Below are positions 6,734 to 64,000 of a DNA stretch of 64,000 nt, piece by piece. The position numbers and the translations under genes were made by a program. Below the pieces are notes generated by a model. The model was not told the origin of the DNA and searched no databases. It saw nothing but the letters and a program-made list of their open reading frames with translations. The first letter of the stretch is position 1. Every line of letters starts with the position of its first letter. The stretch is from Perkinsela sp. CCAP 1560/9 (lineage: Eukaryota; Protista; Euglenozoa: Kinetoplastea), in assembly GCA_965644495.1 (NCBI GenBank), contig CBFFSA010000022.1, forward strand, positions 105,132-169,131. The letters are read 5' to 3'.

Positions 6734-6800
6734 GAGAAAGAAAGTAGCATTCAAAGTCATGGCAGAAAGATTCCTAACCACTTTTAAGAACTAAGTGGTA

Positions 6801-14400: not shown

Positions 14401-14756
14401 CGACAGGTGAAATCTTCTATGATCTCACCGTCGTACACGATCTGGCACCATCTCTTGCGGGAACAACACCGGCGAAGGCAATCAAAGATGCGATCGCGCG
14501 GAAAAACACCAAATACGTCTCATCGAATATGTTCGCCGAGGAGCGATTCGCCTGTTTACCGGTGCTGTCAAGTGGCTCGTTGCACGCCCGAACTCGGGAG
14601 CTGCTACGGCTTCTGGCGGAAAAGATTTCTATTGAGCCCAGCAAGGTGGAAAACGATTTCATACTTCTCTTGCAGGAGATGAATGGAAACATTCTCCTAG
14701 GCCAGCTCAGAAAGTACCTGAGCCAAAGCCATGGGGACGATATTTGCGCTTTTTGA
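11496..14756 (+). pseudogene. CRE-like non-LTR element family C (Tudor-like, RT, CCHC, RLE), frameshifted in T-run at ~12840; 5' end missing
   Basis: GAAPGPSG, RPVAVGE, QFGV, DISNAFN, GVRQGSPLS, AYIDD, LGAYVG, GGLG, CPGC..HIPGC, KHN, SGPD..FYD; poly(A) at ~14862. Confidence 0.9.
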
Positions 14757-21585: not shown

Positions 21586-22770
21586 ATGCCCCCCACCCCA
21601 ATTACTGCTCGTGCCCGTCGTCCCAGGCGACGACGGGTGGATATTCTTACCCCCGTTTCCTCCCCGTCTCTCCGCCAGCGCGAAAGACGGCCACGCGTGC
21701 GTGGCACTACTCCTCCTCCCCGCCCTCTCTCCCCGTTACGTCTAAGGCGCAGAAGCGTCTCCCTCCCAATCCGTCCTCTACCCCGGCTTCCCGTTCCCGT
21801 TTACACCGCCGCCAAGACCGCCGCCGCCAAAACCGCTGCCGTCGTAACCGCCGACGCCGCGCAGCCTCCAGGAGGACGCCGCCAGGAGCTGCTGAGGGCG
21901 ATTCTTCGAATGCCCCCCGAGGACCCGCGCGCCACTCAATTGGGCGAGGCGCTCAGACCCATGTGGGCAACGGCCACGTGGGCCACAAGGGAGCGACTGT
22001 GGTTCCGCCTGCGCGAGTATTGCCAGGCGAAGGGAATCACCGCGAATCCTGCAAACGCGGTGCTCTTCCTGGAGACTCTGCCTCTCGCTACCTCGACGCG
22101 CATGGGGTACGCAGGGGCATTGAGGACTCTGTTCGAGCTCATGGGAATCGAAGGTACCCCATTGAGTCTCTACGTAAAGGCCCTGCAAGCTCAGGGGGGG
22201 CTAGAACCCACGCGGCAGATGCTACCAATCACGCCACTTCTTCTAAAGAAGCTGAGACGTCATCTCGACGTAAAGGAGAGCATATGTTGCCTCCTGTGTT
22301 GGAAAGCCGCTGCGAGATGGACCGAGACCGCCGACCTGAGGCGGGAGCAGTTCGTGAGTGTGGCCAGTCACGAGGTAATCATTTATTGGGGCAGGGGGAC
22401 CAAGACAACCCGTCTGAATCCTTACCGGCCGTACCTCTACGCGATAGTGACTGGACCGGGGACACCCGAACTGGCTCAGTTTGTGGGAAGTTTGAGACCA
22501 GGCCAGCGCCTGTGTTACACGACGGTCCGGGAGATGGACCACAGGATGAATCAACTTCTCGGTCCGGGGTATGGAACACATTCCATAAAAAGAGGTGCAA
22601 TTACTTACCTATTCCACGAGATCTCCCTCGGGAATCTCAGGATGGAGGACGTCCAGAACCTCACGAAACACCTCAACGTCGAATCACTGTTGCGCTACAA
22701 CGCAAGCAGTATTACAACGGCAAGGGCTCTAGGGACGCAGAGAGTCTCAGCACGTCTCCCAGTGCTGTAA
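21586..22770 (+). CDS. Tyrosine recombinase of VIPER/TATE-like retrotransposon
   Basis: AARWTE (catalytic R), KT, HSIKRG (HxxR-like), KH, LRY (catalytic Y). Confidence 0.88.
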   Translation: MPPTPITARARRPRRRRVDILTPVSSPSLRQRERRPRVRGTTPPPRPLSPLRLRRRSVSLPIRPLPRLPVPVYTAAKTAAAKTAAVVTADAAQPPGGRRQELLRAILRMPPEDPRATQLGEALRPMWATATWATRERLWFRLREYCQAKGITANPANAVLFLETLPLATSTRMGYAGALRTLFELMGIEGTPLSLYVKALQAQGGLEPTRQMLPITPLLLKKLRRHLDVKESICCLLCWKAAARWTETADLRREQFVSVASHEVIIYWGRGTKTTRLNPYRPYLYAIVTGPGTPELAQFVGSLRPGQRLCYTTVREMDHRMNQLLGPGYGTHSIKRGAITYLFHEISLGNLRMEDVQNLTKHLNVESLLRYNASSITTARALGTQRVSARLPVL

Positions 22771-24476: not shown

Positions 24477-24518
24477 GGGACAGGATCACCAAATACAAAA
24501 AAAAAAAAAAAAAAAAGT

Positions 24519-31023: not shown

Positions 31024-34000
31024 ATGGCGGAGGCCTCCGGACCGTTCGAAAGTGTGTTGGAAGTCTGTGGCAAACTTCGGACGGCCAGGTGTGGTCGGGG
31101 CAACCTTTTTCTGCCTCCACAGCAGAGGGGGGTTGGGACAAAACTCCGGCAGCGGGCCCTTTTACAGATGTCAAAGGTTTTGGCTGTGGGAAAACGCGTG
31201 GCTGTTGTTTGGTGTATGGCTTATAACGAACGTATTACACTCTGGGAAGGGGTGGTTCACTCATCGCTTGATGGGTCTGGTTGGCTCGTCAAGTACGACT
31301 TGATGAATGGGCGCCTTCTCCCGTTTCCTCCGAGAGATGATCGTATCCATGTGCTAGGCGGCAGAGTTGGACTGCTTCCAAAATCTTTGCGCAAACGTAA
31401 TCGGAAACGCAAATCCTGCTTTCGGCGTGGCTACCGAGAGCAGAGACCCAAGATCAAAGCTATGAGAGAGGGGTTTGCAGTAAGCACCATGAATGTAGAT
31501 ACTTTAAAGTGTAAAACCACAGACGAGTTTGCTCTACGTAAATGTTTCCGTTTGCATCAAGCTGTAGAGTTCATGCGAAGTTACGGCGTAACAATAATGG
31601 CCTTGCAGGAAACGCGACTATCGTTCAAGAGCGAGGAACCGATCATTCATCGTAGGCTCTATCTGGCTGGCATTAGTGTTCATATATATATTATGAGTGC
31701 AATAAAGGGCTATAACGGAATGGCAATGCTGAGTCTGCAACCCATGGGTGTTGAAAAGATCAATGATCGCATTATGAAAGGAACAATGCATATTGGAAAG
31801 ATGAAGGCGTGTATATTTAATGTTTACTCCCCGACGGCTGGTGCAAAGAAAGATAAGCAAGAATCGTTTGATGAGGAGCTATTTGATGCTTGGCATGATT
31901 CACAATGTTCGCTAAAGATAATATGCGGAGACATGAACGCACCTTTGCAAGATCCAAATGGCAGAAAATGTTGTTCGGAAAGAGCGCAAGAATTTCGCAA
32001 ATTTTTGGTAACCCTTGGATCTAAATCGGCTCATCAATGTTGCAGCGCAGAAAGAAAGTGGACTTATAGGTTTCCACCTACGCCGAAACACCCTGATGGT
32101 CTAACAAAACAGCTTGATCATATCATAATAAATTCCCGTTTCAGCTCAGCATTTCGGTATCAGAAGGTGCTTTTGGCTCCCATACCTACGAGACACTGTG
32201 CAGTAATAGCAGGATTAAATATAAAATGGAGAGTGGCATGCAAACCTGGTAAGTTACAACCGTTTTGGGGATCCTTGAGAAACGAAACCATATGTGATAC
32301 ATTCGTGAAAAATGTGGAGGAGTCAATTCAGGGGGGAAATAAACGGTCACGAGAAGGGTCAATTGGTCCCGCTTTATGGGATAAGCTATCGTCCGCAGTC
32401 AACTCCGCCGCAGAGAAATTACCCAGGAAAATTGCCAATATTGGAAAAGCTCCTGACTCGGAAACTGACTCGCATTCCCTTGATATGAAAACTATTGTGC
32501 AAATTGCTCGAAATCGAAGGACTTTCGATACCTTTGCTCGAGAACATGGAAAAATGATTGAAGAATGCGTGAAAGAAGAATGTGAAGTGATCCAAGAAAA
32601 GCTATATAAATGTCCAAAAAGCGCGTATCAAGCAATTCGCTATATTGTAGGGGAAAATCGAAAAGTATTCTCCATGTTTGGTGAAAATGTTCGAGACAGT
32701 ATGTGCAGAGTGAGAGGACATTTTCAGGCGATAGGTAACCAATTAAATCAAATTTCCGAACCGATAAACTTTCCTAACTGTAATAAAAGCTTAATTGGTA
32801 TTGAGGATACGGAATTTACCCTAAAGGAGCTCAGAATTTCTCTGCAAAAAGTCAAATCTGGAAAAGCCTCAGGCTCCGACAACATTCCTATTGAGGCTCT
32901 CTCTACATTGGCTCAGAGCGAAGAAGCACTTGGCATGCTCTTGAACATAATAAATGAAGTAATGTGTACTGGTGCCGCGGCGGATAAATGGAAGATGATT
33001 CTGCAAGTGCCACTTCCAAAGAAAGGGAATCTCAATGATCTTACAAATTGGAGACCGATATGCATTGTAAACCATGTGGTAAAGGTAATGAACCGGATGG
33101 TACTAGAGCGTATACAACCAGCCGTTGAGAATATGCTTCGCTCAAATCAGTTTGGATTTCGCCCGCACCGATCCACTGCCGGCGCAAAGGCAACTTTCGT
33201 GGAAATAGCTACTAAAGCTTCGAGGGGAGAAGGTGTTGCGGTAGCGTTTGTTGACTTTAAGCAGGCATTTCCTTCCGTTACTTTCTCTGCAATACGAGAT
33301 GCGCTGAGAGCATTCCACATACCGGAAAATATTACTAAAGTTATTATGAGCATGTATGAAGGCCTGAAATCTTATGTGAGGACGCCTCATGGTGACACCG
33401 AATCGTTTTCTATTGAAAATGGTACTCTACAAGGGGATGTGCTCGCGCCATATCTCTTTATTATGGTCCTCGACAGGATTATGGCAGAGGCCATTGACGC
33501 GAAGGGGTTGGGTGTCATTGCTTATTCCACCGGGACGAAGAGTCGCGGCGAAAAGCACCTCCGAATTTCTGATGTGGCATATGCAGATGACGTAGTTCTC
33601 TTCGCTTCTTCTAGGTCTGAACTCTCCGAAATGCTAGAAAACCTGTGCAAGTATGCAAAGAGGGCAAACCTTCAGGTAAATCTGGGCAAAAACAAGACCG
33701 CATGGATGGTTCTAGGAAAAATTGATGACATGACAGCTCCCCTTCTAGTCCCAAGTGTTGGAGAAATCCCCCGAGTATACAAATATAAATATCTTGGAAG
33801 TACACAAGAGAATGAAAATCGTCATGTAGCCCCACAAGAACGCATTCGTCTAGGATGGGCCACAATGCATAAACTTCATGCGATATGGAACTCACCCATT
33901 CAAGTCGCAAGTCGGTTAAAAATATTTCGAACACTTGTTATGCCTGTTATTAATTACAACTGCGGCACGTGGAATATTTCATCGAATCAAATGAGCGAAT

Positions 34001-35319
34001 TGGACGTACAAGTCAGCAAAATGCGAAGATGGGTATGCGGAGTAGGGAAAAGATGGAAAACGGGAAAGTGCATTCGTCTTGAATCTCTTTATCAAGATGA
34101 CTTGAAACTCAGCACAACATCAAAAATACAACGTGCTCAACTTATTGGCCATCTTGTTCGACATGAATCGCCGTTTAGCCTAGCCATTCTGTGGCGCGTG
34201 CAAGACAAATCATCATACCCTTCGATCTCTGAATTATGCGCAAAAGATTTAAATCTTTCAATAGAAGAAGTCATACATTCGTCTCGGGACCGCGCCTTAT
34301 GGAGGTCAAGCGTTGATCGACTACGAAATCGGATCGAACCACGCCCTGATTATGTACCCATCGAAGCAAAATCATGGGAAAAACGAGCAATGGTTGCACG
34401 AAAAGAATATAAGTCACTACAATTCGTCGAAGAAGGCGCATTGCCATTCCCAAATATTTCTCCAGCCGTACACATGTATACTGATGGCTCCCTTAAAACA
34501 ACGAAATCGAAAGTTACTCCTGGATGCGGAATCGTGTGGTGGGGGGATGGTATTGAGAAGTCCTTAATGGGAGTACGACCTCCAACGGATATTGAGCTCA
34601 CCATAACTGCGGTAGAGCTCTATGCCGTATATGAGGCACTGAATCTTGCGGCACATTATGGGCAGGACATTGTATTACACACAGACTCAAAATACGTATG
34701 GGAATTCTTCCACATTATAAGGCATCGATTTTGCATAGTTGGGTTTCAATTATTCCAGAGCGCGCAACTACTCAAGAAGATACAACTTTTGTGTTCTAAG
34801 ATCGAGCAAAATAGCAATGTATATTGCATCAAAACCAGAGGGCATGAAGGAAACCCGCACAACGCAACCTCAGACTGGCTCGCTAAACGAGCTTGCGCAC
34901 ATCAAGACGAAAACCCTTCCTTTACTTACCGCGGTTTTGATATCGTGACCAATCAAAAGAGGAAAGGTAACGAAATTCAAAACAATATGAAAAAGAACAA
35001 AAACAAAAATACGAAATTACCAGAGTTTGCGCACACACCTATCGAAATGTCTCCTACGCACTCTATAAGCACGAAAAATAAAGGTAACCTGATAAATGAA
35101 AAGGGGAAACGATCAAGATCCAAGAACAAGCGTGAAAATGCGAATACGCACAGCAACCAAAAAGCACGAAAAGCTGATGGAAAGAGGAGTACGAATACAT
35201 ATTCACCAGGATTCGCAGAGGTAACTTTAGCAAGAAAGCATCCACAAAGAAAGCGAGCTAATTGTGAAGAGGAGTGCAAGAGAACTCGAAAGGGGGGGAG
35301 CTCTTCTTCTAAAACGTGA
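31024..35319 (+). CDS. Intact single-ORF non-LTR retrotransposon polyprotein: APE endonuclease, RT, RNase H (Ingi/L1Tc-like architecture)
   Basis: APE: STMNV, LQETR, NVYSPT, GDMNA, LDHI; RT: KASGSD, WRPI, QFGFR, DFKQAF, GTLQGDVLAP, YADD, YKYLG; RNase H: YTDGS, VELYA, TDS, GH..N..SD. Confidence 0.95.
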   Translation: MAEASGPFESVLEVCGKLRTARCGRGNLFLPPQQRGVGTKLRQRALLQMSKVLAVGKRVAVVWCMAYNERITLWEGVVHSSLDGSGWLVKYDLMNGRLLPFPPRDDRIHVLGGRVGLLPKSLRKRNRKRKSCFRRGYREQRPKIKAMREGFAVSTMNVDTLKCKTTDEFALRKCFRLHQAVEFMRSYGVTIMALQETRLSFKSEEPIIHRRLYLAGISVHIYIMSAIKGYNGMAMLSLQPMGVEKINDRIMKGTMHIGKMKACIFNVYSPTAGAKKDKQESFDEELFDAWHDSQCSLKIICGDMNAPLQDPNGRKCCSERAQEFRKFLVTLGSKSAHQCCSAERKWTYRFPPTPKHPDGLTKQLDHIIINSRFSSAFRYQKVLLAPIPTRHCAVIAGLNIKWRVACKPGKLQPFWGSLRNETICDTFVKNVEESIQGGNKRSREGSIGPALWDKLSSAVNSAAEKLPRKIANIGKAPDSETDSHSLDMKTIVQIARNRRTFDTFAREHGKMIEECVKEECEVIQEKLYKCPKSAYQAIRYIVGENRKVFSMFGENVRDSMCRVRGHFQAIGNQLNQISEPINFPNCNKSLIGIEDTEFTLKELRISLQKVKSGKASGSDNIPIEALSTLAQSEEALGMLLNIINEVMCTGAAADKWKMILQVPLPKKGNLNDLTNWRPICIVNHVVKVMNRMVLERIQPAVENMLRSNQFGFRPHRSTAGAKATFVEIATKASRGEGVAVAFVDFKQAFPSVTFSAIRDALRAFHIPENITKVIMSMYEGLKSYVRTPHGDTESFSIENGTLQGDVLAPYLFIMVLDRIMAEAIDAKGLGVIAYSTGTKSRGEKHLRISDVAYADDVVLFASSRSELSEMLENLCKYAKRANLQVNLGKNKTAWMVLGKIDDMTAPLLVPSVGEIPRVYKYKYLGSTQENENRHVAPQERIRLGWATMHKLHAIWNSPIQVASRLKIFRTLVMPVINYNCGTWNISSNQMSELDVQVSKMRRWVCGVGKRWKTGKCIRLESLYQDDLKLSTTSKIQRAQLIGHLVRHESPFSLAILWRVQDKSSYPSISELCAKDLNLSIEEVIHSSRDRALWRSSVDRLRNRIEPRPDYVPIEAKSWEKRAMVARKEYKSLQFVEEGALPFPNISPAVHMYTDGSLKTTKSKVTPGCGIVWWGDGIEKSLMGVRPPTDIELTITAVELYAVYEALNLAAHYGQDIVLHTDSKYVWEFFHIIRHRFCIVGFQLFQSAQLLKKIQLLCSKIEQNSNVYCIKTRGHEGNPHNATSDWLAKRACAHQDENPSFTYRGFDIVTNQKRKGNEIQNNMKKNKNKNTKLPEFAHTPIEMSPTHSISTKNKGNLINEKGKRSRSKNKRENANTHSNQKARKADGKRSTNTYSPGFAEVTLARKHPQRKRANCEEECKRTRKGGSSSSKT

Positions 35320-44609: not shown

Positions 44610-47600
44610 TCACTGACGCAGTCCACCAATCCAATGTGCTTCTGGAATATACTCGCGGAGCTGCGATACAATAGTATACGCTGCTAGCTTTTCTATCTCG
44701 AGTTGGAAGGCCTCACGTACGTCTTCGTACTTTTGTTTGGCTCGTTGGGATAATGCCTTGAGGAGGGTTTTGGTGTCGTTGTGCAGAAGACCGCAGTCAG
44801 AGGCGGCCAGGCAACGAAAAGAGTCGCTTTCTACGCCTTTCTCCGTAACGTACTTCTTGAATTTCTTGTCGAGCACGTGCTGCATCAGCGCTGTACTTGT
44901 TTGTTTGGCATAGCTGCTGCAACAAGTGTGAACAACGGTAAAATCATACAGGACCTCCCCCATGTGGGGCCACATAATAGCAAGATCAGTACCGGATCGG
45001 ATTCTGCGGGCTTTGCAAGGATGATGTTCAGCTACTTCCGCTGAGATGGAACACTTGCACTTAGTACAGAAAAACGAAGAATGGATGCGCGGTTCGATAA
45101 TACAAGGGAGACCAGCTTTGGAGCACAAATCTGCGAGGTACCTCACTATGTGTGAGTGCTTTCTGGTGCAATTCATGCCCGAGCACCGGGAGCATCCTGC
45201 GACGTGTGGTATAATGCTGGTAGGAGATTCATGGCCACAGCATCCAGGGCATATAACATCGGCCGGTGCGTTATGTAATCCGATGCCCAAACGCATCATC
45301 AAAGTGTATCGGAAGAGGTACGGGTTTACATAATTGCTGGTGCTTTCTAAATGCATGTTTGATTCCTTTGTACGCTTCAATAAAAGTCCCATGTGAGAAT
45401 CCTTCTGCAGCTCAGTTATCTGTTTATCGTGTTCTGCACTTAGCTTCTTTTTCAATAGCTTGCGCGCTGCCTCTCCTCGACTTTGCGGTTGTTTCACAGC
45501 TTTTTCGCTGCCTTTCTGATCTACCGGAGCGTTATTGGGTTTAAGGTGCTCATCAATAGATTTGCTGGCAGTTTCGAAGAAATGTTTTTGCTTCAGAGTC
45601 GAGGAAATTAAGCCTAGGCCACCGAGTTTCTGTGGTAGAGCGGCGAGTTTCAGGGCGTTTGCGTCTGCTCCACTCCACTTTTCTAGAACTTTGTTTACTT
45701 GGTTCTCGAAGGATTGTGCTAGTTGGAAAGTAGCGCCTGGCCGATGTACTCGTAGATGGTAATCGTGCCGTGGAATCGTACAACGGCGGAGAATGGCAAG
45801 AGACAAATTACTGGGACCCATAAGCAACAACCTGCGGAATAGGCACTTGTGTTTCTCCATTTTCTTGATCAGCAGATTTTCCACGACTTGGTCTGTACCT
45901 ACGTATGCGCCTAAGACTTTTATCGCATCACTGCAAAAGTTTACTCCAAGTTTTTCCAACGGAGGAGGCTGAGCTATGTTGGGAATGTTCTTCTGAAACC
46001 AATCGCATTTCTGGAAATTAATTCGGAGGTTCATCTCTGCGGCGATCTCACGCAGGTAAAAGAAAGCTGCCTCCAATGCTTGCACGTTTTTGGAGCTCAA
46101 AGTCACATCGTCTTGGTATGCTCGGATCTTCACGTCAGGATAGAGGTGCATGAGTTCTCGTAGCGGGCCTTGCAAAAGTGCGCAGAAGTACATTGATGAA
46201 AGTTCCGATCCTTGGCGAATTCCTGAAGAGCTTTCGATGGTAGCAAACAGAGCATTGTGCGCAAAAAATAGCAGCTCAGAGGGAATCCCATATTCTAGGT
46301 AGAATAGGCGCATGAAAGGCTTGAAAATGGGATTACCAAGGAGTGCCTCAGCAATGGCGTTGCGTTGTGGTGTATTATACGCGTTGCTAAAATCGACGGT
46401 GAGGAGAGCATGTCCTTCTTCGTATTCATTTAAAAGTTCGTGAACGATGGACTCACATGCGTTTTTTTGCAAAATGCCTCGTTGAATTGGGGAGAAAAAA
46501 TTTTGCAGAGCGTTTTCATGTCGTTGTAGAAGGATGGAACCGCAAATCTTCAGAATGGTATCCCCCATCGCAATAGGTCGAATTCCATTTTGAGGTTTCG
46601 CTAGCGCGATGATTCTGCATCGGGTTAGACGTTTTCGCACATTCAGAGGAACTTCGCCGTTGATGACATCCCGAAGCATGTGGCAAAGTGAAAGACATGA
46701 CTCTTCGTCGTCTACGAGCAGTCGCATCATGCTTTCACTCAGGCCGGTTGGTCCTGGTGAAGCGCCTCTGGATAATTTTTCGGTCGCTAGGCGAACCTCT
46801 GATTTCTCAACAACGCCAGTCCGTGGGAAGTCTGCTTCCGGGATTCGTATGGCGTCGCCTTCAGGATGAAGTTGTTGAAGCTTTCGCACTTTTTCTTCAG
46901 GAGTGAGAGCTGATTCCTTGTAGACATTGTCCAGGATCCGAGTTGCTTTGCCAAGGTTTCCTGCCCGCGCCGTCTGTAGGGCGTGCCTGATCGAACGCCT
47001 GTCAATTTCTAACTCCGCCCGTTGTTCCGCACTCAAGTTGCTAGCTTCCAAGTTTTCTCGGTCGTTGCGAACATGAGCTACTTTTTGGTTTCGTCGAATT
47101 GCTTGACGTACTGTCGCAAGTGAATCGCGAGGCGCATTCAAAAATTTGTGCCATATCGCCTCTTTTTCTGAGTCAAGCTCCGCCGCTGCATATCCCCGAA
47201 TTATCGCACGGAAAATCGCCACAACATGAACCGCGAAAGATGGGCCTATTTGAGCCATAGGCGGGAGCGGATCAAGGTCACTCTGACCGTCTTCGCATGA
47301 GATGTGCTCCGCTTGTTCCTCCAAATTTTGTGTCGGCATCTCGATTTTGAATAACTTAGTGGCTTGGAGGTTACAGATTCTGATTTTATTGGACGGTGGA
47401 AGATAAAGAAAACCGCATGGACCATCGTGACCTAGAGCCGGCTCGTATGAAATCTTGACTTTCACGGTTGATTTTCGCACGGTCCTGCCTACAACGATGC
47501 CGTTTGACTTGTAGTTTGTAGTGTTCTGTCGGAAGCCCCATTCGATCACACATTCTGTACCCTTGCCCCACTTGGAAACGATGTTGTACACTTGGTCGGG

Positions 47601-48098
47601 CGATTTGTTGCCGGCCTGTGTCATTAGCTCCTGTACTCGATCTTGCGTCGATCCATCGTCGTCCAGACACATTGTATCACTGGTCTCGCTTTCTGTTTCG
47701 GACATTTCTTTGGCTGGGTCCTCTTGGATATGGTTTTCGTCATGGGCTATGTTCTCGTGTGATTGACTCGTAGATCCGATGCGGAAGTTCTTGGCTTTGA
47801 TTTTGATTAGATTCCGCGATGTGATTTCACACGGAGGCTCATGGTCCGCCCAATTCGGGGCTAGTGTTTTGGAACCTATTATCTTGATCTTTGGAGTCTT
47901 CTTCACCTTCACTGGTGTCTCCGTGTGCGATCCTGATTCTTCTGCTACCTTTATTCCGTTCGTCTTGCTTTGATCTCGTTGAGTACGTTGTTTTTCAACT
48001 CTCCCGTGAGACTTCCCGTTGTTCACTGTTGTTCTGCTGCCCTTTTTCCGCGTGTTTTCGGAATCTAAACGAGAAGACGTACGAGAAAGGCGTGTCAT
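44610..48098 (-). CDS. Intact CRE-like polyprotein family A2 (Tudor-like, RT, CCHC, RLE)
   Basis: GASPGPTG, RPIAMGD, DFSNAYN, GIRQGS, AYQDD, CPGC..HVAGC, SGTD..LYD; T-run 44457-44484. Confidence 0.92.
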   Translation of the reverse strand: MTRLSRTSSRLDSENTRKKGSRTTVNNGKSHGRVEKQRTQRDQSKTNGIKVAEESGSHTETPVKVKKTPKIKIIGSKTLAPNWADHEPPCEITSRNLIKIKAKNFRIGSTSQSHENIAHDENHIQEDPAKEMSETESETSDTMCLDDDGSTQDRVQELMTQAGNKSPDQVYNIVSKWGKGTECVIEWGFRQNTTNYKSNGIVVGRTVRKSTVKVKISYEPALGHDGPCGFLYLPPSNKIRICNLQATKLFKIEMPTQNLEEQAEHISCEDGQSDLDPLPPMAQIGPSFAVHVVAIFRAIIRGYAAAELDSEKEAIWHKFLNAPRDSLATVRQAIRRNQKVAHVRNDRENLEASNLSAEQRAELEIDRRSIRHALQTARAGNLGKATRILDNVYKESALTPEEKVRKLQQLHPEGDAIRIPEADFPRTGVVEKSEVRLATEKLSRGASPGPTGLSESMMRLLVDDEESCLSLCHMLRDVINGEVPLNVRKRLTRCRIIALAKPQNGIRPIAMGDTILKICGSILLQRHENALQNFFSPIQRGILQKNACESIVHELLNEYEEGHALLTVDFSNAYNTPQRNAIAEALLGNPIFKPFMRLFYLEYGIPSELLFFAHNALFATIESSSGIRQGSELSSMYFCALLQGPLRELMHLYPDVKIRAYQDDVTLSSKNVQALEAAFFYLREIAAEMNLRINFQKCDWFQKNIPNIAQPPPLEKLGVNFCSDAIKVLGAYVGTDQVVENLLIKKMEKHKCLFRRLLLMGPSNLSLAILRRCTIPRHDYHLRVHRPGATFQLAQSFENQVNKVLEKWSGADANALKLAALPQKLGGLGLISSTLKQKHFFETASKSIDEHLKPNNAPVDQKGSEKAVKQPQSRGEAARKLLKKKLSAEHDKQITELQKDSHMGLLLKRTKESNMHLESTSNYVNPYLFRYTLMMRLGIGLHNAPADVICPGCCGHESPTSIIPHVAGCSRCSGMNCTRKHSHIVRYLADLCSKAGLPCIIEPRIHSSFFCTKCKCSISAEVAEHHPCKARRIRSGTDLAIMWPHMGEVLYDFTVVHTCCSSYAKQTSTALMQHVLDKKFKKYVTEKGVESDSFRCLAASDCGLLHNDTKTLLKALSQRAKQKYEDVREAFQLEIEKLAAYTIVSQLREYIPEAHWIGGLRQ

Positions 48099-52332: not shown

Positions 52333-53614
52333 GAGTGCATAAATCCACTTTGGCGCGCCGCTGCTGCTGCGCGTGGTCTCAGGTTTTGGTTTTCAGAAAA
52401 AGGCATATCAAAGTTTTGTGACTTCACGACTTCAATCGCGGCGATTTGCGTGTGCGGTGCCTCGGATCGCGCAACGCAAATCCATCAACATTCGGAGCGC
52501 ACACTCACGAGTGCATAAATCCACTTTGGCGCGCCGCTGCGTGCTGCGCGTGGTCTCAGCTTTCGGTTTTCAGAAAAAGGCGCATCAAAGTTTTGCGACT
52601 TCACGACTTCAATCGCGGCGATTTGCGTGTGCGGTGCCTCGGATCGCGCAACGCAAATCCATCAACATTCGGAGCGCACACTCACGATTGCATAAATCCA
52701 CTTTGGCGCGCCGCTGCGTGCTGCGCGTGGTCTCAGCTTTCGGTTTTCAGAAAAAGGCGCATCAAAGTTTTGTGACTTCGCGACTTCAATCGCGGCGATT
52801 TGCGTGTGCGGTGCCTCGGATCGCGCAACGCAAATCCATCAACATTCGGAGCGCACACTCACGAGTGCATAAATCCACTTTGGCGCGCCGCTGCGTGCTG
52901 CGCGTGGTCTCAGCTTTCGGTTTTCAGAAAAAGGCGCATCAAAGTTTTGCGACTTCACGACTTCAATCGCGGCGATTTGCGTGTGCGGTGCCTCGGATCG
53001 CGCAACGCAAATCCATCAACATTCGGAGCGCACACTCACGAGTGCATAAATCCACTTTGGCGCGCCGCTGCGTGCTGCGCGTGGTCTCAGCTTTCGGTTT
53101 TCAGAAAAAGGCGCATCAAAGTTTTGCGACTTCACGACTTCAATCGCGGCGATTTGCGTGTGCGGTGCCTCGGATCGCGCAACGCAAATCCATCAACATT
53201 CGGAGCGCACACTCACGATTGCATAAATCCACTTTGGCGCGCCGCTGCGTGCTGCGCGTGGTCTCAGCTTTCGGTTTTCAGAAAAAGGCGCATCAAAGTT
53301 TTGTGACTTCGCGACTTCAATCGCGGCGATTTGCGCGATGTGTGCGGTGCCTCGGATCGCGCAACGAAAATCCATCAACATTCGGAATGCGCACTCACGA
53401 GTGCATAAATCCACTTTGGCGCGCCCCTGCTGCTGCGCGTGGTCTCAGGTTTTGGTTTTCAGAAAAAGACATATCAAAGTTTTCTGACATCACGACTTCA
53501 ATCGCGGCGATTTGCATGTGCGCTGCCTCGGATCGCGCAACGCAAATCCATCAACATTCGGAGCTCACACTCACGAGTGCATATATCCACTTTGGCGCGC
53601 CGCTGCGTGCTGCG
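52333..53614. repeat. 177-bp tandem satellite, about 7.2 units
   Basis: Unit starts at 52333, 52509, 52686, 52863, 53040, 53217, 53399, 53575. Confidence 0.95.
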
Positions 53615-53790
53615 AAACCATATGTGATACATTCGTGAAAAATGTGGAGGAGTCAATTCAGGGGGGAAATAAAGGGGGGAGACTACTACGAGTAGATCTT
53701 ATGTTTTCCTTTTTGTAAATTATGCAGTCTGACTTAGCTTCTAATATCGATTAGAAGTTCGGATTCTCTTTTGACCATGGATCTCCAACT

Positions 53791-54575
53791 CTAAATTCCC
53801 AACTCTGCGGCACCCTTATCCTTCTCCAGAAAAGACCGCAGCTGTGAATGCACAACGGCCCCATTTAACTCTTGCAGGTGGAGCTGAAATTCGAGGTGTA
53901 CTTGCTTCCGGGGGAGACAGCACGCATCTGCTAGAGCACTCAGAAGGGACTTCGTGTTGTGGTGAAGCGCCCCCCCTGACAGCATTGGAATGCATCTGAA
54001 CATGTCCTCAGGAATTGTGCCGGGTCGGACGTAAGTGTCATGCTTACGTTTGATGGCATCACGAAACAGCTTTGCACAGTTTGTACCTAGGTTCGATGCC
54101 TCTAATTCATGAATTACGGTGAAATCATAAAAAATTTCCCCTGTATTCCAAAAAACGACAAGGTCAGGTCCTGATCTTCGAAAAGAACGACCACCGCATA
54201 CCTTTTCATGCGTCCGCCGGTAATCGGAGTCCACTTTCTGGTTACACTGCGTGCACGCATATGTCGAGAAATTACGCGGTTCTTTTTCGCATGGAATGCC
54301 TGCCTTCAAACAGAGCTCGTAAAGAAAATTGACTAGCGAATTATGTTTTGTAGTTGCGTTTAAGCCTTGGCACTTCGAACACCCGGGGATGTGTGTTAAA
54401 ATTGTTTGCGATTCTAGTAGCATTTTGCAACCCGGGCAGAGCAATTGCTTAGGTAGACTCGGATGAGCAATACCCAATCTCGGCATCATTGCAAGCGAGA
54501 ACAAATGCGAGGGCACAAATTTTGCATTGGACATAACCCATTCTGCATTACCCGTGTAACTTACCGCTTTCAGGA
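53791..54575 (-). pseudogene. 3' fragment of CRE-like element (CCHC plus RLE)
   Basis: CPGC..THIPGC, KHN, EPR, CTQC..H...C, SGPD..FYD. Confidence 0.88.
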
Positions 54576-54595
54576 TCCAATCCAATCCAATCCAA
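54576..54595 (-). repeat. (TTGGA)4 3' tail of the LINE
   Basis: TCCAA x4 on the plus strand, at the end of the 3' UTR. Confidence 0.7.
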
Positions 54596-54784
54596 AAGAC
54601 CGACATATGTCGGTTAGAATGTTAAATGTTTTCCCCCCGAACTTATACTCCCTCGCCTTCCAGTTCAGAGTTTAGTAGTGCCTACTATTTTACTTTCACA
54701 CAATACTTTTCCTTTATCTTCCTGAACTCTTCCTCAGGGTATTCCGAACCTGCTGGTGGAAACACGTCTTCCGCCCAACTCTTA

Positions 54785-57700
54785 CTATGAAGGCGCCCTC
54801 TTTCCACCAGTTTTCGCAATCTTCCCGCACAGCGTGACTTTAGCCTCGGCGCCACGCTTGGGTGCTGGATTGGTTTTCGTCTTTCCCTTTTCCAAGGTTC
54901 TATGTTTTATCAGCTTTTCCAAGGATTTGTCGATTTGTGATGCGTTGGAATCATTACTTGTTTTTCTCTTTTTCTGCTCAGGCGGTCGAGGAACTTTTCG
55001 CGCTGCAATCAGTGCTAACCCATCTGCCTCGTCGTTCCATTTATTTCCTGAGTGACCCTTGACTTTGCACATATATATTGAGTACAAATCATGTTTTAAG
55101 GACCGTAATTTTCCGTCTAACTGGGAGAACAAATCTCCATTTAAAACCCCCTTGTAACCAACGATTCGCCGCCGATATCGAAGATTGTGAAAGAAGTCCC
55201 ATAGATAGTAAGAGTCTGTATGAAACAGACAAGCGCATGGTTTTGACGGCAGTTGGAGAAGGGCATGCTGAAAAGCTAAGATCTCTACTCGCTCAATAGT
55301 GTCTGATTCCAATGGTATGGATATCCGTGAGGGTTCGCATCGTGGTTTTAGAACTACGATACCTATGCCACTTCGAATCTCTTTCGTATTTTTCATCGGC
55401 AGAACAGAGCCATCGGTATATATTTGTATGGCTTTATAGGCTGGAAAAGGCACATTTGATTCTTCAACGAACTGTAATTCTGAAGGACTTTTTTGTTTTT
55501 TAGCTTTGGCAAGAGCAGTTTTCCACTTTGCTGACCCAATTTTTTCGTATTCTATGAGCGGTTCAAGTTCACGTCGCAATTTTTCTGTCAGACGATACCA
55601 GTGTTCACGGTCTGACGCAAATACCAATGCCTCTTCCAGTGTAATGTTAAGATCCTTGAAGCAAGCCTCGCTTGGAGATAAATTGCGTGCATTCGGGCGT
55701 TGTTTCCACTGTACAAGCTCTTGAAAATCACTGGAGTGCCTCAGCATGTGCCCGACGAGCTTGGCCCTCTGAACCTTGTGTATAGTAGAAAAGCGCTCAG
55801 TTTCAAGATACAGAGAAGCATTCGGGTAGCTCATTCCGTATTCATCTAATCTGTTGCATTGGCAAACTATTCTTCTCATGTTATTAACTTCAACGTCAAT
55901 TCTTCGGAGCATGGATTTTGAAATAGAAAGTGCACCTGTCCCAAAGTTTAGCACCGGATATACTATTGAATCGTAGAGGCGCAGCTTAGTCTCCGGGCTA
56001 AGTGGTGAAGACCAAATACCATTCATTCGAAAGAGAGATCCCCAAGCTAGTTTCAATCGATCTTTAACTGTAGATGTAAAATCATTTTCCTGCCGATGCC
56101 CTAAGTGTTTGTAAGACGTAACTTTCGGAATCATCCCCGAGAATTTGCTGTTCAGGCTCTCGCTGCTCATTTGAGATTTACCAAAAGTTAACCAGGCTGT
56201 CTTGTTTGCTCCGACGGCTAGTTTCAGATTAGCTTTGCGTGACTCTTCAGCTACATTGTCTATCATATTTGTCAAACCAATCTTCGTGTCACTAAATAAC
56301 GCTATATCGTCCGCATACTCAATGTCACTCAGGCGCTTTTCATGAAGACCCCGCTTTCTTGTACCCCTAGAGCTGAGAAGAACCCCGTCTGATTTTCCAT
56401 CTAGTGCTTTATTGAGAATTCTATCTAACACCATAACGAACAGATAAGGCGCCAATACATCACCTTGAAGTATTCCTGTAGTGATAGGGAAAGGTTTTGT
56501 GATTCCAATAGAAGTTCGTACAGTGCCTTTCAGCTCATCGTATATAGACATTATCATCTTAGAAAGACATGGACCTACTCGAAATGCATGCAAACTAGCT
56601 TTAATAGCAGCGAACGATACCGAAGGAAATGCTTTAGCAAAGTCTATAAAAGCTACAGAAAGGCCTTGTCCTCTGAATGCTTTGGTTTTTATTTCGTTCA
56701 TGATAATCTGAGCTCCAGAAGTCGCTCGGTTAGGTCGAAACCCATACTGGTTACCCCGAAGAGACTTTTCAATGTTGGGTCTAATGCGGGAGAGTATCAT
56801 ATGATTCATGAGCTTAACTACGCTATTTACTACGCATATAGGCCGCCAATTCTCAATGTTAGTGAGGTCTCCTTTCTTTGGGATGGGTATTTGAAGAGTG
56901 TTGCGCCAGGCTTCCTCTGTGACTCCCGTTTCGTGTACCTGGTTGATTATATTCAGGAGATGCGATCTCAGATCAGGGTGGACCGCTATAGCTTGAAGGG
57001 CTTCCATTGGTATTCCGTCACTTCCCGGTGTTTTTCCTCTTCTGAAATGTTCTAAAGATGTGCTTAACTCCTCGCTTGTAAATGCTGCATCGGATATTGG
57101 TACTAACGGCGGCGGCAGCAGTTCAAAGCTAAGATTTGGATCTCCATCATCAGCGCCACTAAATTTCATGAAGTACGATCGAATTTCGTTAAGTTTATCA
57201 TTTCGTGAGCTTCCGTTCGTGCTAAAGGTATCACGATATTGCCCGCATATCTTTCGAATCGTTCTCCATGGGTTTGAATGGTTTTTACGAAGCTGTTTTT
57301 CAATCTCCAAGCATTCGTCAGAAATAATCTCTTCAACTTCCGCTTTATTCTCCTTTACGAGAGCGTTGAACACCTTTTTGTTTCTGCTCTTGTGATATAA
57401 ACCGCGCAAATCATGTATTTTTGAGTCCTTTACAGCTTCTTTGTTCAAATTTCGTTTCGTCGGTTTTTTGAAAGTTTTTACAGCATTTTTCATATATTGT
57501 GCGAGAGCGCCCCATGATCGACAAGAGTTCGAGGTTGCTCGATATTGGTCGTGAACTTTATTGATGAAATTCTTCCTATCCTCACTATTTCGAAGAGAAA
57601 TCCACGAGAGCTGATTCGTATTCGTTTTGGGATCACTGACTCGCCATTTAATTTTAATTCTGGCTATAACACAACAGTGAGTAGTAGGAATGGGTGCCTT

Positions 57701-58864
57701 GATCACTTTGTGTCGTTGAATTGCCGATGCAAATCTGCTACAAATAAATATGTGATCTAACTGCCTTAAAGCTTTGTTTGGTAATTCGCATGTCCATTTC
57801 CGACTACTTGGACAAAGACTGTGCGCAGACTTACAGTCTATAGAACAAGAAAGTCCTTTAAGACGGGCGGCCGCAATGGGATCTAGATCCTTATTTGTTA
57901 TATGTGTCAAAGGTGCATTAAAGTCGCCCAGCACAATTAATGGGCGACGCGGGTTGCTTTCCCTTATTCTCAAGCAGCAACGTTCGAGTTCTCCGTAGAA
58001 CTCCGTAACCTCGACGTCCTTAGAATCGCGTGTAGGAGAATATACGTTAATAACTGTTGCGACTCCTTCCTCCATCTCAAATTCACCCGACATAATCCTT
58101 TCACTGATTTTAGATACCTTAGACAAGGGAAAAGTGCTGACGAATCCCATTCCATTGTATGCATCCTTTGCGCGCGCTGGAATGAGGCTCAAGTGAAACT
58201 CTGCGTTCCGATATTGTACTTTGCGGTGAAGGACATCCGACTTTTCAGAAGATGGGAATCTAAATCGCGTTTCCTGCAGGCCCAGAATATTTATTCCCTT
58301 CAGATCAATGAAGGTAAGTACTTCGCAAAGGTGTCCGCACTTTCGTAGGCTAAACTCGTCTTCACCTTTCAGCTTAAGAGTAGTTACGTTCAAGGTTCCC
58401 ACACTCAACATTCTCTTCACAGCGGGGCCCCCAGGGCCCACCAAGTCACGGAGAGCACGTTTGCCAGACTGTGCCCTGTATTTGCGAGAGCGCTTTTTGA
58501 AACGACGTCTACGCTTAGGCGCACAAACCCGAGCAGCACAGAGGACGATGTGAGGACTACATGGAGGGAACGGAAGCGTAAATCGCGAACACTGAGCGTA
58601 GCGAACACGCCAGCGGCTCGGCACCCAACTCTCTACTACCCCCTCCCAAACACTGTAGTTCGATGAATCCGCGTACCTCCAAACCACCGAAAGCTTAGCG
58701 CCTAAACAAAGCAGTCGCATAATGTGTCCTAACGACCTCGCGCGGAGTTTAGCAGATTCCGTTCCACCCTTCGCAGGACGGAAAAGAATCCCCCGATCAA
58801 GCTTGGAACACGCAAGAAGATTCATAATAGCAGTGGGCATGCGTGCACCGGAAGCATCCGCCAT
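54785..58864 (-). CDS. Intact single-ORF APE-RT-RNase H non-LTR retrotransposon polyprotein (second family)
   Basis: GTLNV, LQETR, NVYSPT, GDFNA, LDHI; KTPGSD, QYGFR, DFAKAF, GILQGDVLAP, YADD; YTDGS, VEILA, TDS, GHSGN..NDEAD. Confidence 0.95.
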   Translation of the reverse strand: MADASGARMPTAIMNLLACSKLDRGILFRPAKGGTESAKLRARSLGHIMRLLCLGAKLSVVWRYADSSNYSVWEGVVESWVPSRWRVRYAQCSRFTLPFPPCSPHIVLCAARVCAPKRRRRFKKRSRKYRAQSGKRALRDLVGPGGPAVKRMLSVGTLNVTTLKLKGEDEFSLRKCGHLCEVLTFIDLKGINILGLQETRFRFPSSEKSDVLHRKVQYRNAEFHLSLIPARAKDAYNGMGFVSTFPLSKVSKISERIMSGEFEMEEGVATVINVYSPTRDSKDVEVTEFYGELERCCLRIRESNPRRPLIVLGDFNAPLTHITNKDLDPIAAARLKGLSCSIDCKSAHSLCPSSRKWTCELPNKALRQLDHIFICSRFASAIQRHKVIKAPIPTTHCCVIARIKIKWRVSDPKTNTNQLSWISLRNSEDRKNFINKVHDQYRATSNSCRSWGALAQYMKNAVKTFKKPTKRNLNKEAVKDSKIHDLRGLYHKSRNKKVFNALVKENKAEVEEIISDECLEIEKQLRKNHSNPWRTIRKICGQYRDTFSTNGSSRNDKLNEIRSYFMKFSGADDGDPNLSFELLPPPLVPISDAAFTSEELSTSLEHFRRGKTPGSDGIPMEALQAIAVHPDLRSHLLNIINQVHETGVTEEAWRNTLQIPIPKKGDLTNIENWRPICVVNSVVKLMNHMILSRIRPNIEKSLRGNQYGFRPNRATSGAQIIMNEIKTKAFRGQGLSVAFIDFAKAFPSVSFAAIKASLHAFRVGPCLSKMIMSIYDELKGTVRTSIGITKPFPITTGILQGDVLAPYLFVMVLDRILNKALDGKSDGVLLSSRGTRKRGLHEKRLSDIEYADDIALFSDTKIGLTNMIDNVAEESRKANLKLAVGANKTAWLTFGKSQMSSESLNSKFSGMIPKVTSYKHLGHRQENDFTSTVKDRLKLAWGSLFRMNGIWSSPLSPETKLRLYDSIVYPVLNFGTGALSISKSMLRRIDVEVNNMRRIVCQCNRLDEYGMSYPNASLYLETERFSTIHKVQRAKLVGHMLRHSSDFQELVQWKQRPNARNLSPSEACFKDLNITLEEALVFASDREHWYRLTEKLRRELEPLIEYEKIGSAKWKTALAKAKKQKSPSELQFVEESNVPFPAYKAIQIYTDGSVLPMKNTKEIRSGIGIVVLKPRCEPSRISIPLESDTIERVEILAFQHALLQLPSKPCACLFHTDSYYLWDFFHNLRYRRRIVGYKGVLNGDLFSQLDGKLRSLKHDLYSIYMCKVKGHSGNKWNDEADGLALIAARKVPRPPEQKKRKTSNDSNASQIDKSLEKLIKHRTLEKGKTKTNPAPKRGAEAKVTLCGKIAKTGGKRAPS

Positions 58865-58876
58865 TTTGCAAATAAA

Positions 58877-61800
58877 TTTACAAAAAACTTGATCTTTACA
58901 AAAAACTTGATCTTTACAAAAAACTTGATCTTTACAAAAAACTTGATCTTTACAAAAAACTTGATCTTTACAAAAAACTTGATCTTTACAAAAAACTTGA
59001 TCTTTACAAAAAACTTGATCTTTACAAAAAACTTGATCTTTACAAAAAACTTGATCTTTACAAAAAACTTGATCTTTACAAAAAACTTGATCTTTACAAA
59101 AAACTTGATCTTTACAAAAAACTTGATCTTTACAAAAAACTTGATCTTTACAAAAAACTTGATCTTTACAAAAAACTTGATCTTTACAAAAAACTTGATC
59201 TTTACAAAAAACTTGATCTTTACAAAAAACTTGATCTTTACAAAAAACTTGATCTTTACAAAAAACTTGATCTTTACAAAAAACTTGATCTTTACAAAAA
59301 ACTTGATCTTTACAAAAAACTTGATCTTTACAAAAAACTTGATCTTTACAAAAAACTTGATCTTTACAAAAAACTTGATCTTTACAAAAAACTTGATCTT
59401 TACAAAAAACTTGATCTTTACAAAAAACTTGATCTTTACAAAAAACTTGATCTTTACAAAAAACTTGATCTTTACAAAAAACTTGATCTTTACAAAAAAC
59501 TTGATCTTTACAAAAAACTTGATCTTTACAAAAAACTTGATCTTTACAAAAAACTTGATCTTTACAAAAAACTTGATCTTTACAAAAAACTTGATCTTTA
59601 CAAAAAACTTGATCTTTACAAAAAACTTGATCTTTACAAAAAACTTGATCTTTACAAAAAACTTGATCTTTACAAAAAACTTGATCTTTACAAAAAACTT
59701 GATCTTTACAAAAAACTTGATCTTTACAAAAAACTTGATCTTTACAAAAAACTTGATCTTTACAAAAAACTTGATCTTTACAAAAAACTTGATCTTTACA
59801 AAAAACTTGATCTTTACAAAAAACTTGATCTTTACAAAAAACTTGATCTTTACAAAAAACTTGATCTTTACAAAAAACTTGATCTTTACAAAAAACTTGA
59901 TCTTTACAAAAAACTTGATCTTTACAAAAAACTTGATCTTTACAAAAAACTTGATCTTTACAAAAAACTTGATCTTTACAAAAAACTTGATCTTTACAAA
60001 AAACTTGATCTTTACAAAAAACTTGATCTTTACAAAAAACTTGATCTTTACAAAAAACTTGATCTTTACAAAAAACTTGATCTTTACAAAAAACTTGATC
60101 TTTACAAAAAACTTGATCTTTACAAAAAACTTGATCTTTACAAAAAACTTGATCTTTACAAAAAACTTGATCTTTACAAAAAACTTGATCTTTACAAAAA
60201 ACTTGATCTTTACAAAAAACTTGATCTTTACAAAAAACTTGATCTTTACAAAAAACTTGATCTTTACAAAAAACTTGATCTTTACAAAAAACTTGATCTT
60301 TACAAAAAACTTGATCTTTACAAAAAACTTGATCTTTACAAAAAACTTGATCTTTACAAAAAACTTGATCTTTACAAAAAACTTGATCTTTACAAAAAAC
60401 TTGATCTTTACAAAAAACTTGATCTTTACAAAAAACTTGATCTTTACAAAAAACTTGATCTTTACAAAAAACTTGATCTTTACAAAAAACTTGATCTTTA
60501 CAAAAAACTTGATCTTTACAAAAAACTTGATCTTTACAAAAAACTTGATCTTTACAAAAAACTTGATCTTTACAAAAAACTTGATCTTTACAAAAAACTT
60601 GATCTTTACAAAAAACTTGATCTTTACAAAAAACTTGATCTTTACAAAAAACTTGATCTTTACAAAAAACTTGATCTTTACAAAAAACTTGATCTTTACA
60701 AAAAACTTGATCTTTACAAAAAACTTGATCTTTACAAAAAACTTGATCTTTACAAAAAACTTGATCTTTACAAAAAACTTGATCTTTACAAAAAACTTGA
60801 TCTTTACAAAAAACTTGATCTTTACAAAAAACTTGATCTTTACAAAAAACTTGATCTTTACAAAAAACTTGATCTTTACAAAAAACTTGATCTTTACAAA
60901 AAACTTGATCTTTACAAAAAACTTGATCTTTACAAAAAACTTGATCTTTACAAAAAACTTGATCTTTACAAAAAACTTGATCTTTACAAAAAACTTGATC
61001 TTTACAAAAAACTTGATCTTTACAAAAAACTTGATCTTTACAAAAAACTTGATCTTTACAAAAAACTTGATCTTTACAAAAAACTTGATCTTTACAAAAA
61101 ACTTGATCTTTACAAAAAACTTGATCTTTACAAAAAACTTGATCTTTACAAAAAACTTGATCTTTACAAAAAACTTGATCTTTACAAAAAACTTGATCTT
61201 TACAAAAAACTTGATCTTTACAAAAAACTTGATCTTTACAAAAAACTTGATCTTTACAAAAAACTTGATCTTTACAAAAAACTTGATCTTACAAAAAACT
61301 TGATCTTACAAAAAACTTGATCTTACAAAAAACTTGATCTTACAAAAAACTTGATCTTACAAAAAACTTGATCTTACAAAAAACTTGATCTTACAAAAAA
61401 CTTGATCTTACAAAAAACTTGATCTTACAAAAAACTTGATCTTACAAAAAACTTGATCTTACAAAAAACTTGATCTTACAAAAAACTTGATCTTACAAAA
61501 AACTTGATCTTACAAAAAACTTGATCTTACAAAAAACTTGATCTTACAAAAAACTTGATCTTACAAAAAACTTGATCTTACAAAAAACTTGATCTTACAA
61601 AAAACTTGATCTTACAAAAAACTTGATCTTACAAAAAACTTGATCTTACAAAAAACTTGATCTTACAAAAAACTTGATCTTACAAAAAACTTGATCTTAC
61701 AAAAAACTTGATCTTACAAAAAACTTGATCTTACAAAAAACTTGATCTTACAAAAAACTTGATCTTACAAAAAACTTGATCTTACAAAAAACTTGATCTT

Positions 61801-64000
61801 ACAAAAAACTTGATCTTACAAAAAACTTGATCTTACAAAAAACTTGATCTTACAAAAAACTTGATCTTACAAAAAACTTGATCTTACAAAAAACTTGATC
61901 TTACAAAAAACTTGATCTTACAAAAAACTTGATCTTACAAAAAACTTGATCTTACAAAAAACTTGATCTTACAAAAAACTTGATCTTACAAAAAACTTGA
62001 TCTTACAAAAAACTTGATCTTACAAAAAACTTGATCTTACAAAAAACTTGATCTTACAAAAAACTTGATCTTACAAAAAACTTGATCTTACAAAAAACTT
62101 GATCTTACAAAAAACTTGATCTTACAAAAAACTTGATCTTACAAAAAACTTGATCTTACAAAAAACTTGATCTTACAAAAAACTTGATCTTACAAAAAAC
62201 TTGATCTTACAAAAAACTTGATCTTACAAAAAACTTGATCTTACAAAAAACTTGATCTTACAAAAAACTTGATCTTACAAAAAACTTGATCTTACAAAAA
62301 ACTTGATCTTACAAAAAACTTGATCTTACAAAAAACTTGATCTTACAAAAAACTTGATCTTACAAAAAACTTGATCTTACAAAAAACTTGATCTTACAAA
62401 AAACTTGATCTTACAAAAAACTTGATCTTACAAAAAACTTGATCTTACAAAAAACTTGATCTTACAAAAAACTTGATCTTACAAAAAACTTGATCTTACA
62501 AAAAACTTGATCTTACAAAAAACTTGATCTTACAAAAAACTTGATCTTACAAAAAACTTGATCTTACAAAAAACTTGATCTTACAAAAAACTTGATCTTA
62601 CAAAAAACTTGATCTTACAAAAAACTTGATCTTACAAAAAACTTGATCTTACAAAAAACTTGATCTTACAAAAAACTTGATCTTACAAAAAACTTGATCT
62701 TACAAAAAACTTGATCTTACAAAAAACTTGATCTTACAAAAAACTTGATCTTACAAAAAACTTGATCTTACAAAAAACTTGATCTTACAAAAAACTTGAT
62801 CTTACAAAAAACTTGATCTTACAAAAAACTTGATCTTACAAAAAACTTGATCTTACAAAAAACTTGATCTTACAAAAAACTTGATCTTACAAAAAACTTG
62901 ATCTTACAAAAAACTTGATCTTACAAAAAACTTGATCTTACAAAAAACTTGATCTTACAAAAAACTTGATCTTTACAAAAAACTTGATCTTTACAAAAAA
63001 CTTGATCTTTACAAAAAACTTGATCTTTACAAAAAACTTGATCTTTACAAAAAACTTGATCTTTACAAAAAACTTGATCTTTACAAAAAACTTGATCTTT
63101 ACAAAAAACTTGATCTTTACAAAAAACTTGATCTTTACAAAAAACTTGATCTTTACAAAAAACTTGATCTTTACAAAAAACTTGATCTTTACAAAAAACT
63201 TGATCTTTACAAAAAACTTGATCTTTACAAAAAACTTGATCTTTACAAAAAACTTGATCTTTACAAAAAACTTGATCTTTACAAAAAACTTGATCTTTAC
63301 AAAAAACTTGATCTTTACAAAAAACTTGATCTTTACAAAAAACTTGATCTTTACAAAAAACTTGATCTTTACAAAAAACTTGATCTTTACAAAAAACTTG
63401 ATCTTTACAAAAAACTTGATCTTTACAAAAAACTTGATCTTTACAAAAAACTTGATCTTTACAAAAAACTTGATCTTTACAAAAAACTTGATCTTACAAA
63501 AAACTTGATCTTACAAAAAACTTGATCTTACAAAAAACTTGATCTTACAAAAAACTTGATCTTACAAAAAACTTGATCTTACAAAAAACTTGATCTTACA
63601 AAAAACTTGATCTTACAAAAAACTTGATCTTACAAAAAACTTGATCTTACAAAAAACTTGATCTTACAAAAAACTTGATCTTACAAAAAACTTGATCTTA
63701 CAAAAAACTTGATCTTACAAAAAACTTGATCTTACAAAAAACTTGATCTTACAAAAAACTTGATCTTACAAAAAACTTGATCTTACAAAAAACTTGATCT
63801 TACAGAAAACTTGATCTTACAAAAAACTTGATCTTACAAAAAACTTGATCTTACAAAAAACTTGATCTTACAAAAAACTTGATCTTACAAAAAACTTGAT
63901 CTTACAAAAAACTTGATCTTACAAAAAACTTGATCTTACAAAAAACTTGATCTTACAAAAAACTTGATCTTACAAAAAACTTGATCTTACAAAAAACTTG
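58877..64000 (-). repeat. 18/17-bp tandem array (TGTAAAGATCAAGTTTTT / TGTAAGATCAAGTTTTT on minus), over 5 kb, runs off the window
   Basis: 18-mer blocks ~58877-61288 and ~62971-63490; 17-mer blocks ~61289-62970 and ~63491-64000. Confidence 0.98.

Follow-up and report, generated by a model that had tools for sequence, protein, structure and literature searches.

Among the retrotransposons of kinetoplastids, members of the L1Tc/ingi (INGI) group have one open reading frame (ORF) with APE endonuclease, reverse transcriptase (RT) and RNase H domains, a 5′ fold resembling the ribozyme of hepatitis delta virus (HDV), and target-site duplications (TSDs) (PMC4035085, PMC3185411, PMC12278014). A 77–79-nt hallmark, Pr77, and a poly(A) tail are further features of the group (PMC12278014). 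HDV-like ribozymes cut 5′ of the first base of the P1 helix (PMC3774820, PMC4035085). In Perkinsela, ingi-type elements and an L1Tc-like transcript capped with the spliced leader (SL) have been reported, as have hundreds of SL fragments, very short untranslated regions and non-AG acceptors (PMC5601477). Described here is a long interspersed nuclear element (LINE) of Perkinsela sp. CCAP 1560/9 that resembles the INGI elements in its ORF, its predicted 5′ fold, its TSDs and its kinetoplastid host, and that is preceded by a long tandem array of its own first nucleotides. All parts of the focal copy lie on the minus strand of a 64,000-nt window, positions 105132–169131 of contig C22 (CBFFSA010000022.1) in a 21-Mb, 110-contig assembly; C-numbers denote contigs and L-numbers element loci. 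Our proposal, based on sequence comparison and held with less than even confidence, is that the RT of this LINE iteratively re-copies the 17–19-nt start of its own RNA at insertion, up to hundreds of times, rebuilding a trans-splice acceptor, and that a structurally new HDV-like ribozyme, with a hairpin in loop L3, removes the leader for mobilisation.

A preliminary description of the window had reported an intact minus-strand APE-RT-RNase H ORF of 1359 aa. This was confirmed at 54785–58864, with catalytic motifs present and Pfam matches to Exo_endo_phos (residues 182–378), RVT_1 (661–922) and RNase_H (1144–1285); the RNase H resembles the cellular RNase HI type. The ORF is divergent, as had been stated, from that of the first LINE of the window (31024–35319), with which it shares 37% identity. 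An ORF with APE and RT, a 3′ simple-repeat tail, variable TSDs and dispersed copies identify the element as an autonomous non-LTR retrotransposon.

The array of more than 5 kb, said to end 12 bp before the ATG in the context CAAAATGGCGGA, was found at 58877–64000, and the units quoted for the other two arrays of the window were as given. The array is real (99% matches over approximately 5.1 kb), but it is not the pure 18-mer array first described. Its 291 whole units, which are followed by a partial one, comprise 163 18-mers and 128 17-mers, arranged from the ORF outwards in blocks of 134 18-mers (58877–61288), 99 17-mers (61289–62971), 29 18-mers (62972–63493) and 29 17-mers (63494–63986), with the partial unit after them. 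One A at the unit joint makes the difference between the two lengths. Dimers of the reverse-strand unit number 331 genome-wide, 43 of them on contig C8 and 288 inside the window. Since these use up the count, the array ends where the window does, or no more than a few bases from there; it probably reaches the end of contig C22, a position that is probably best read as an assembly break.

Insertion sites, as they are read from the assembly, show that the array travels with the element as part of the insertion. TSDs of 8–18 bp enclose both array and body in L004 (44 units), L007 (59), L015 (approximately 84) and L017 (approximately 18), and they also enclose the single-unit copies L006, L009, L025 and L026; among eight related copies, TSD-enclosed arrays thus range from one unit, in four cases, to approximately 84. 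Being inside TSDs, the arrays belong to the element. The empty sites of L004 and L006 are both present in the window, without any repeat. An origin of the array as SL-derived sequence or as a host target was considered and rejected, given that the resemblance to the SL is loose and that empty sites lack arrays.

Among 30 loci of this genome, every family carries a 17- or 18-mer of its own, and the same layout with other 18–19-mers was observed in L031, L032, L034, L036, L038 and L042, relatives from four other public samples. All of the array-bearing elements fall in one clade (41 rows, SH-aLRT 100; supports are SH-aLRT values from a quick tree). Common to the units across families are a first G, a T-tract and a final A, the last in all but one of the units seen; the AAGAY core proposed in the preliminary description fails in several related families. 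Its suggestion that repeat unit and element family have co-diverged was borne out, in that unit distance tracks RT distance (Mantel rho 0.60, 14 of 10,000 permutations, for 15 families that are not independent of one another) and that repeat type is not random with respect to family across approximately 30 copies. The co-divergence does not, however, lend the independent support claimed for an element-encoded repeat/RT system, because the unit is merely the element's own 5′ end, changing with its pairing partner in the ORF. In L030, the upstream units end in A and position 18 of the head is G, which may reflect the addition of a base without template or, alternatively, the inherited retention of an ancestral unit.

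When reading starts at its G, the unit corresponds to the first 17–19 nt of a predicted HDV-like ribozyme that overlaps the ORF start (58742–58894) and is supported by fold prediction and covariation. P1 (58894–58889 with 58800–58795), P2 (58861–58857 with 58746–58742), P3 (58855–58853 with 58803–58801), P1.1, a P4 hairpin (about 58790–58755) and a candidate catalytic cytosine in J4/2 (58752) occur in HDV order, and together with the G at +1 they form the nested double pseudoknot characteristic of HDV-like ribozymes. A further hairpin occupies J1/2 (58885–58864), and another is inserted in L3 (58852–58804). The last unit of the array (58877–58894) represents nucleotides G1 to A18 of the predicted RNA, its first 6 nt forming the 5′ strand of P1 and its T-tract the 5′ arm of the J1/2 hairpin. 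The partner of that P1 strand is a run of six bases approximately 95 nt downstream, within the ORF, situated right before an invariant GGGG. The unit joint, A/G1 (58894–58895), is where the ribozyme is predicted to cut, 5′ of G1, and at the same time a candidate trans-splice acceptor AG.

Comparison of families provides data in support of this fold. In 16 heads, 90 of the 96 P1 pairs are Watson–Crick, as against 52 when the families are permuted, and none of 100,000 permutations scored as high. Across the covariation alignment, in which two rows are misaligned in P1, 95% of cells are paired and eight pairs show two-sided changes; none of 500 shuffles gave as high a count, and slid controls reached 29–44%. 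The z-score for the fold of the focal head is −3.4. In all 15 heads with a measurable period, the periodicity ends one period on from G1, to within 2 nt, and it does so exactly in L042, an out-of-sample head with a J1/2 of approximately 170 nt. Five single-unit copies start at or within a few nucleotides of G1, allowing for microhomology. Each unit joint is predicted, from these models, to be the cut site of a built-in self-cleaving RNA. A search of Rfam gave no match to the head. A Twister fold was rejected, its conserved elements being in the wrong order, as was the idea that the top of the J1/2 hairpin fixes the unit end, which holds in most families of the host genome and fails in L034, L038 and L035. 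Six ribozyme heads lie at C15:28275–47437, five of them at a spacing of 3,420 bp, as in a tandemly duplicated short or deleted element.

Every joint consists of a T-tract, an A and then G1, and in the family of the 31024 element the joint provides the sole AG in the stretch from the previous unit to the ATG. Approximately 500 dispersed copies of the kinetoplastid SL motif were detected genome-wide, in accord with the hundreds of SL fragments known from Perkinsela (PMC5601477). In two heads, from two sister families (C1:108998 and C1:1467057), the SL exon is fused with its last G as G1. Such a fusion is the product expected of splicing at the joint AG, and it suggests that the unit joint serves as trans-splice acceptor. 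Under uniform placement, approximately 0.001 SL–head adjacencies of this exact kind would be expected, a value that SL clustering raises. No SL was found at an upstream unit joint. The presence of the SL on just two heads, amid many SL-headed retrocopies, is consistent with a ribozyme that takes the leader off ahead of mobilisation. Within the window, SL copies at 738, 3296, 16681, 38557 and 43274 stand at the front of several unrelated retroelements and of a short ORF.

Closely related copies were compared in terms of their array lengths. L015 and L016 differ at one position in 4329 nt, occupy different sites, and have in common a derived single-nucleotide polymorphism and a tail interruption. 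Both also contain a 16-mer at unit 5 or 6, for which the chance is approximately 0.003, so the proximal units have evidently been transmitted. The bodies of L014 and L015, on the other hand, differ at one position and are preceded by 22 and 83 whole units, respectively; L001 and L002, with nine differences, have unlike block maps. In young arrays, internal point variants are singletons and joint variants occur as blocks, with an extra G at one joint. Arrays are joined to truncated bodies at a unit boundary at window position 5185 and in L036. The 18-17-18-17 order of the focal array, and a duplication of 20 units in the array beginning at 6818, are consistent with the re-copying of blocks. A 17-nt duplication of the truncated 5′ end is present in L010 (L010:1477–1517), and pieces of target DNA are re-copied at the left junctions of L015, L017, L019 and L025; taken together, these suggest an RT prone to template jumps, of which a non-LTR RT is known to be capable (PMC8857657). 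The sequence patterns point in two directions: unlike lengths on near-identical bodies, singleton internal variants beside block-forming joint variants, and joins to truncated bodies at unit boundaries favour writing at insertion, and the variant found in both L015 and L016 tells against making every array afresh. A role for the RT in array length is plausible. An apparent de novo array on the internal truncation point of L010 proved to be a head that belongs to another family and lies on the opposite strand.

We give roughly an even chance to the view that this is an RTE-like, RNase H-bearing LINE whose leader is carried partly on its RNA, lengthened by RT slip-back and trimmed at the joints. 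Host polycistronic transcription would read through the element. Acceptance of the SL at a unit joint (T-tract, then A/G) would yield a capped mRNA whose ATG lies 30 nt downstream, and the last G of the SL would take the place of G1, so that P1 could still form. Cutting by the ribozyme 5′ of a G1, in the last or an upstream unit, would produce the RNA for reverse transcription, with one to many units; as the P1 partner is able to pair with any unit, upstream cuts would give multi-unit RNAs, on which the RT could slip back with full homology. At the RNA 5′ end, the RT would slip back or re-prime by whole units, re-copying single units or blocks. Each insertion would thereby acquire its own array length, to which slippage at the DNA level would add later change, and the array would restore the upstream processing signal lost by cutting or splicing.

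Several observations weigh against this account. HDV-like ribozymes have a short L3 with a conserved G, and here L3 reads UCC, then a 35–70-nt hairpin closed by GG/CC, then A, with no evident counterpart of that G; in one R2 case, loss of the conserved G goes with inactivity (PMC3774820). The structured stretch is also coding, so its invariance may in part be a protein constraint. The SL evidence amounts to two copies from a pair of sister families, and SL copies are clustered in DNA where elements abound. The element was present in no RNA run, and neither cleavage nor splicing was observed directly. Unequal exchange predicts block duplications equally well, and one clear case of a 17–19-nt duplication was seen among approximately ten 5′-truncated junctions.

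The array might instead be an inherited minisatellite and nothing more, with some units carried on the RNA, lengthening taking place later in the DNA by slippage and unequal exchange, and the RT writing nothing extra. The variant common to L015 and L016 would follow directly, as would the higher-order duplications and the order of units in the three long focal-family arrays, all with 18-mers proximal and 17-mers distal. We nevertheless regard this as rather unlikely: several copies have kept a single unit, yet siblings nearly identical to them have arrays of 84 to 290 almost pure units, the singleton variants within young arrays are not the amplified blocks that such growth would leave, and cutting or splicing at joints would shorten the arrays in each cycle. 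It is unlikely, too, that the arrays arise entirely de novo, from a one-unit RNA of which RNase H leaves a 5′ remnant of 17–19 nt, set by the distance from polymerase to RNase H, that the RT then copies end to end hundreds of times. The period of 17–19, whatever the length of J1/2, lies close to the spacing of approximately 18 nt in the RT of human immunodeficiency virus type 1 (HIV-1) (PMC5389522). The location of length variants at the joint (including the extra G), the meeting of arrays and truncated bodies at unit boundaries and the duplication in L010 also agree with such stuttering, which would moreover fit the finding that neither array nor ribozyme was seen in two sister RTs without RNase H. 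The contigs of those sisters may, however, lack 5′ ends, the RNase H here is of another type than that of HIV-1, most truncated ends have no such duplication, and the lineage-linked variant of L015 and L016 would be left unexplained.

Far less probable is an array of tandem promoter monomers as in mouse L1, with transcription starting at the G of each unit and the fold being a relic or a translation signal. The architecture, a variable number of 5′ monomers inside the TSD, is indeed similar, and the unit ends are AT-rich and TATA-like, but 18 bp is very short for a promoter. Furthermore, the covariation of P1, P2 and P3 and the conserved J4/2 cytosine speak for the maintenance of a ribozyme fold, and the SL fusions point to read-through and splicing. 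Least credible of all is a telomere-like cap, or a host satellite targeted by the LINE. A telomere-like role, with enrichment at chromosome ends, had been raised in the preliminary description, and the focal array does probably lie at the end of C22 with the 5′ end of the element facing outward. Long pure arrays commonly break assemblies, however, and the arrays are within TSDs and absent from empty sites. A search with a model of the head located at least 110 heads in the genome, many deep within megabase contigs; telomeric retrotransposons of the HeT-A/TART or TRAS/SART type, by contrast, occur only at chromosome ends or within the telomere repeat. The genome does contain a (TTTAGGG)n array (C78:23504–24142), a candidate for the true telomere repeat, unlike the TTAGGG of trypanosomatids, for which a search of the genome was blank. 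A weak match to Telomerase_RBD (E 0.03) was found at C6:535416–535721.

The 3′ end of the focal element consists of an untranslated region common to family copies (54594–54784) and a microsatellite tail, (GGATT)n (54575–54593), with the element edge at 54576/54577. The target (53791–54576, also minus strand) is the 3′ part of an unrelated RT element, kin to the ORFs at 12540–14756 and 44610–48098. In four other samples, contigs break at the same edge, and both the target element without interruption and different flanks are seen there. No left TSD of the focal copy was found on C22; it lies outside the available sequence.

Elsewhere, arrays situated behind 3′ tails (L034:4389–4486, L037:4216–4291 and L014) indicate that arrays of other families are frequent insertion sites for such LINEs. 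At 4798–8508 of the window, a 5′-truncated LINE body is flanked on both sides by arrays made of the unit of its family. On the left, the array meets RT sequence at a boundary between units. The array on the right begins at 6818, contains 94 units, among them the internal 20-unit duplication, is not followed by a head and borders on a VIPER/TATE-like element. The 4798 and 6818 arrays were rejected as a single TSD-bounded insertion, since their flanks derive from different elements. Two copies of the VIPER/TATE-like element, 99.5% identical, are present in the window (8509–10373 and 22650–24514), and the insertion point of L018 lies no more than a few bases from the junction of the 6818 array with this element. 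A 177-bp satellite lies at 52333–53614, and L033 shows it, with inversions, in the related organism of another sample. At the satellite junction (53613–53676), a 64-bp patch matches an internal part of the 31024 ORF at 98% identity.

When the element is compared with the INGI group, the domain order APE-RT-RNase H is the same, but in place of Pr77 there is a fold of approximately 150 nt that overlaps the ORF and has a hairpin in L3. Tails of GGATT, GT, ATAGG, GTAT or ATT repeats replace poly(A), and a 5′ array of up to approximately 290 units is found where INGI elements have one or two whole hallmarks. No named L1Tc/ingi element was among the homologue matches of the searches, which were word-limited, and the tree contains no L1Tc/ingi reference. 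The nearest outside RTs are APE-RT proteins of approximately 1000 aa, several with DUF6451, among which the 41-row clade nests; its placement with the RTE group, whose LINEs also have short microsatellite tails, rests on unnamed metagenome proteins. RNase H, the 5′ array and this ribozyme variant set the Perkinsela element apart from that group. Even with a passively inherited array, a fold whose L3 holds a hairpin would broaden the HDV-like family.

No description of this layout, an array of such size with one base common to cutting and splicing, was found in the literature searched, the coverage of which was incomplete. The layout suggests a route by which a LINE could keep its 5′ end and yet be translated where every mRNA is capped by trans-splicing, with cut site and splice acceptor on one base and the upstream pyrimidine tract supplied by the repeat. 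In R2, too, an HDV-like cut sets the RNA's 5′ end, and occasional short tandem duplications occur at 5′ junctions (PMC3774820). Those of R2, however, are rare, run to a few copies at most and are made of target sequence, and R2 itself is site-specific, with a restriction-like endonuclease. Mouse L1 carries family-specific 5′ monomers, variable in number, through which a new copy regains its expression signal. They are promoter monomers of approximately 200 bp in few copies, whereas the units described here, at 17–19 bp and up to hundreds of copies, would serve RNA processing. If the RT does write the units, the repeated copying of a short RNA template would liken it to telomerase, DRT2 and DRT10 (PMC12039810; bioRxiv 10.64898/2026.06.29.735271), which have dedicated non-coding RNA templates and demonstrated activity, whereas the present element would use its own leader as template, its activity being deduced from its copies. 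It would then represent a natural eukaryotic retrotransposon that performs telomerase-like repeat synthesis on its own RNA, and a direct route from transposon to minisatellite.

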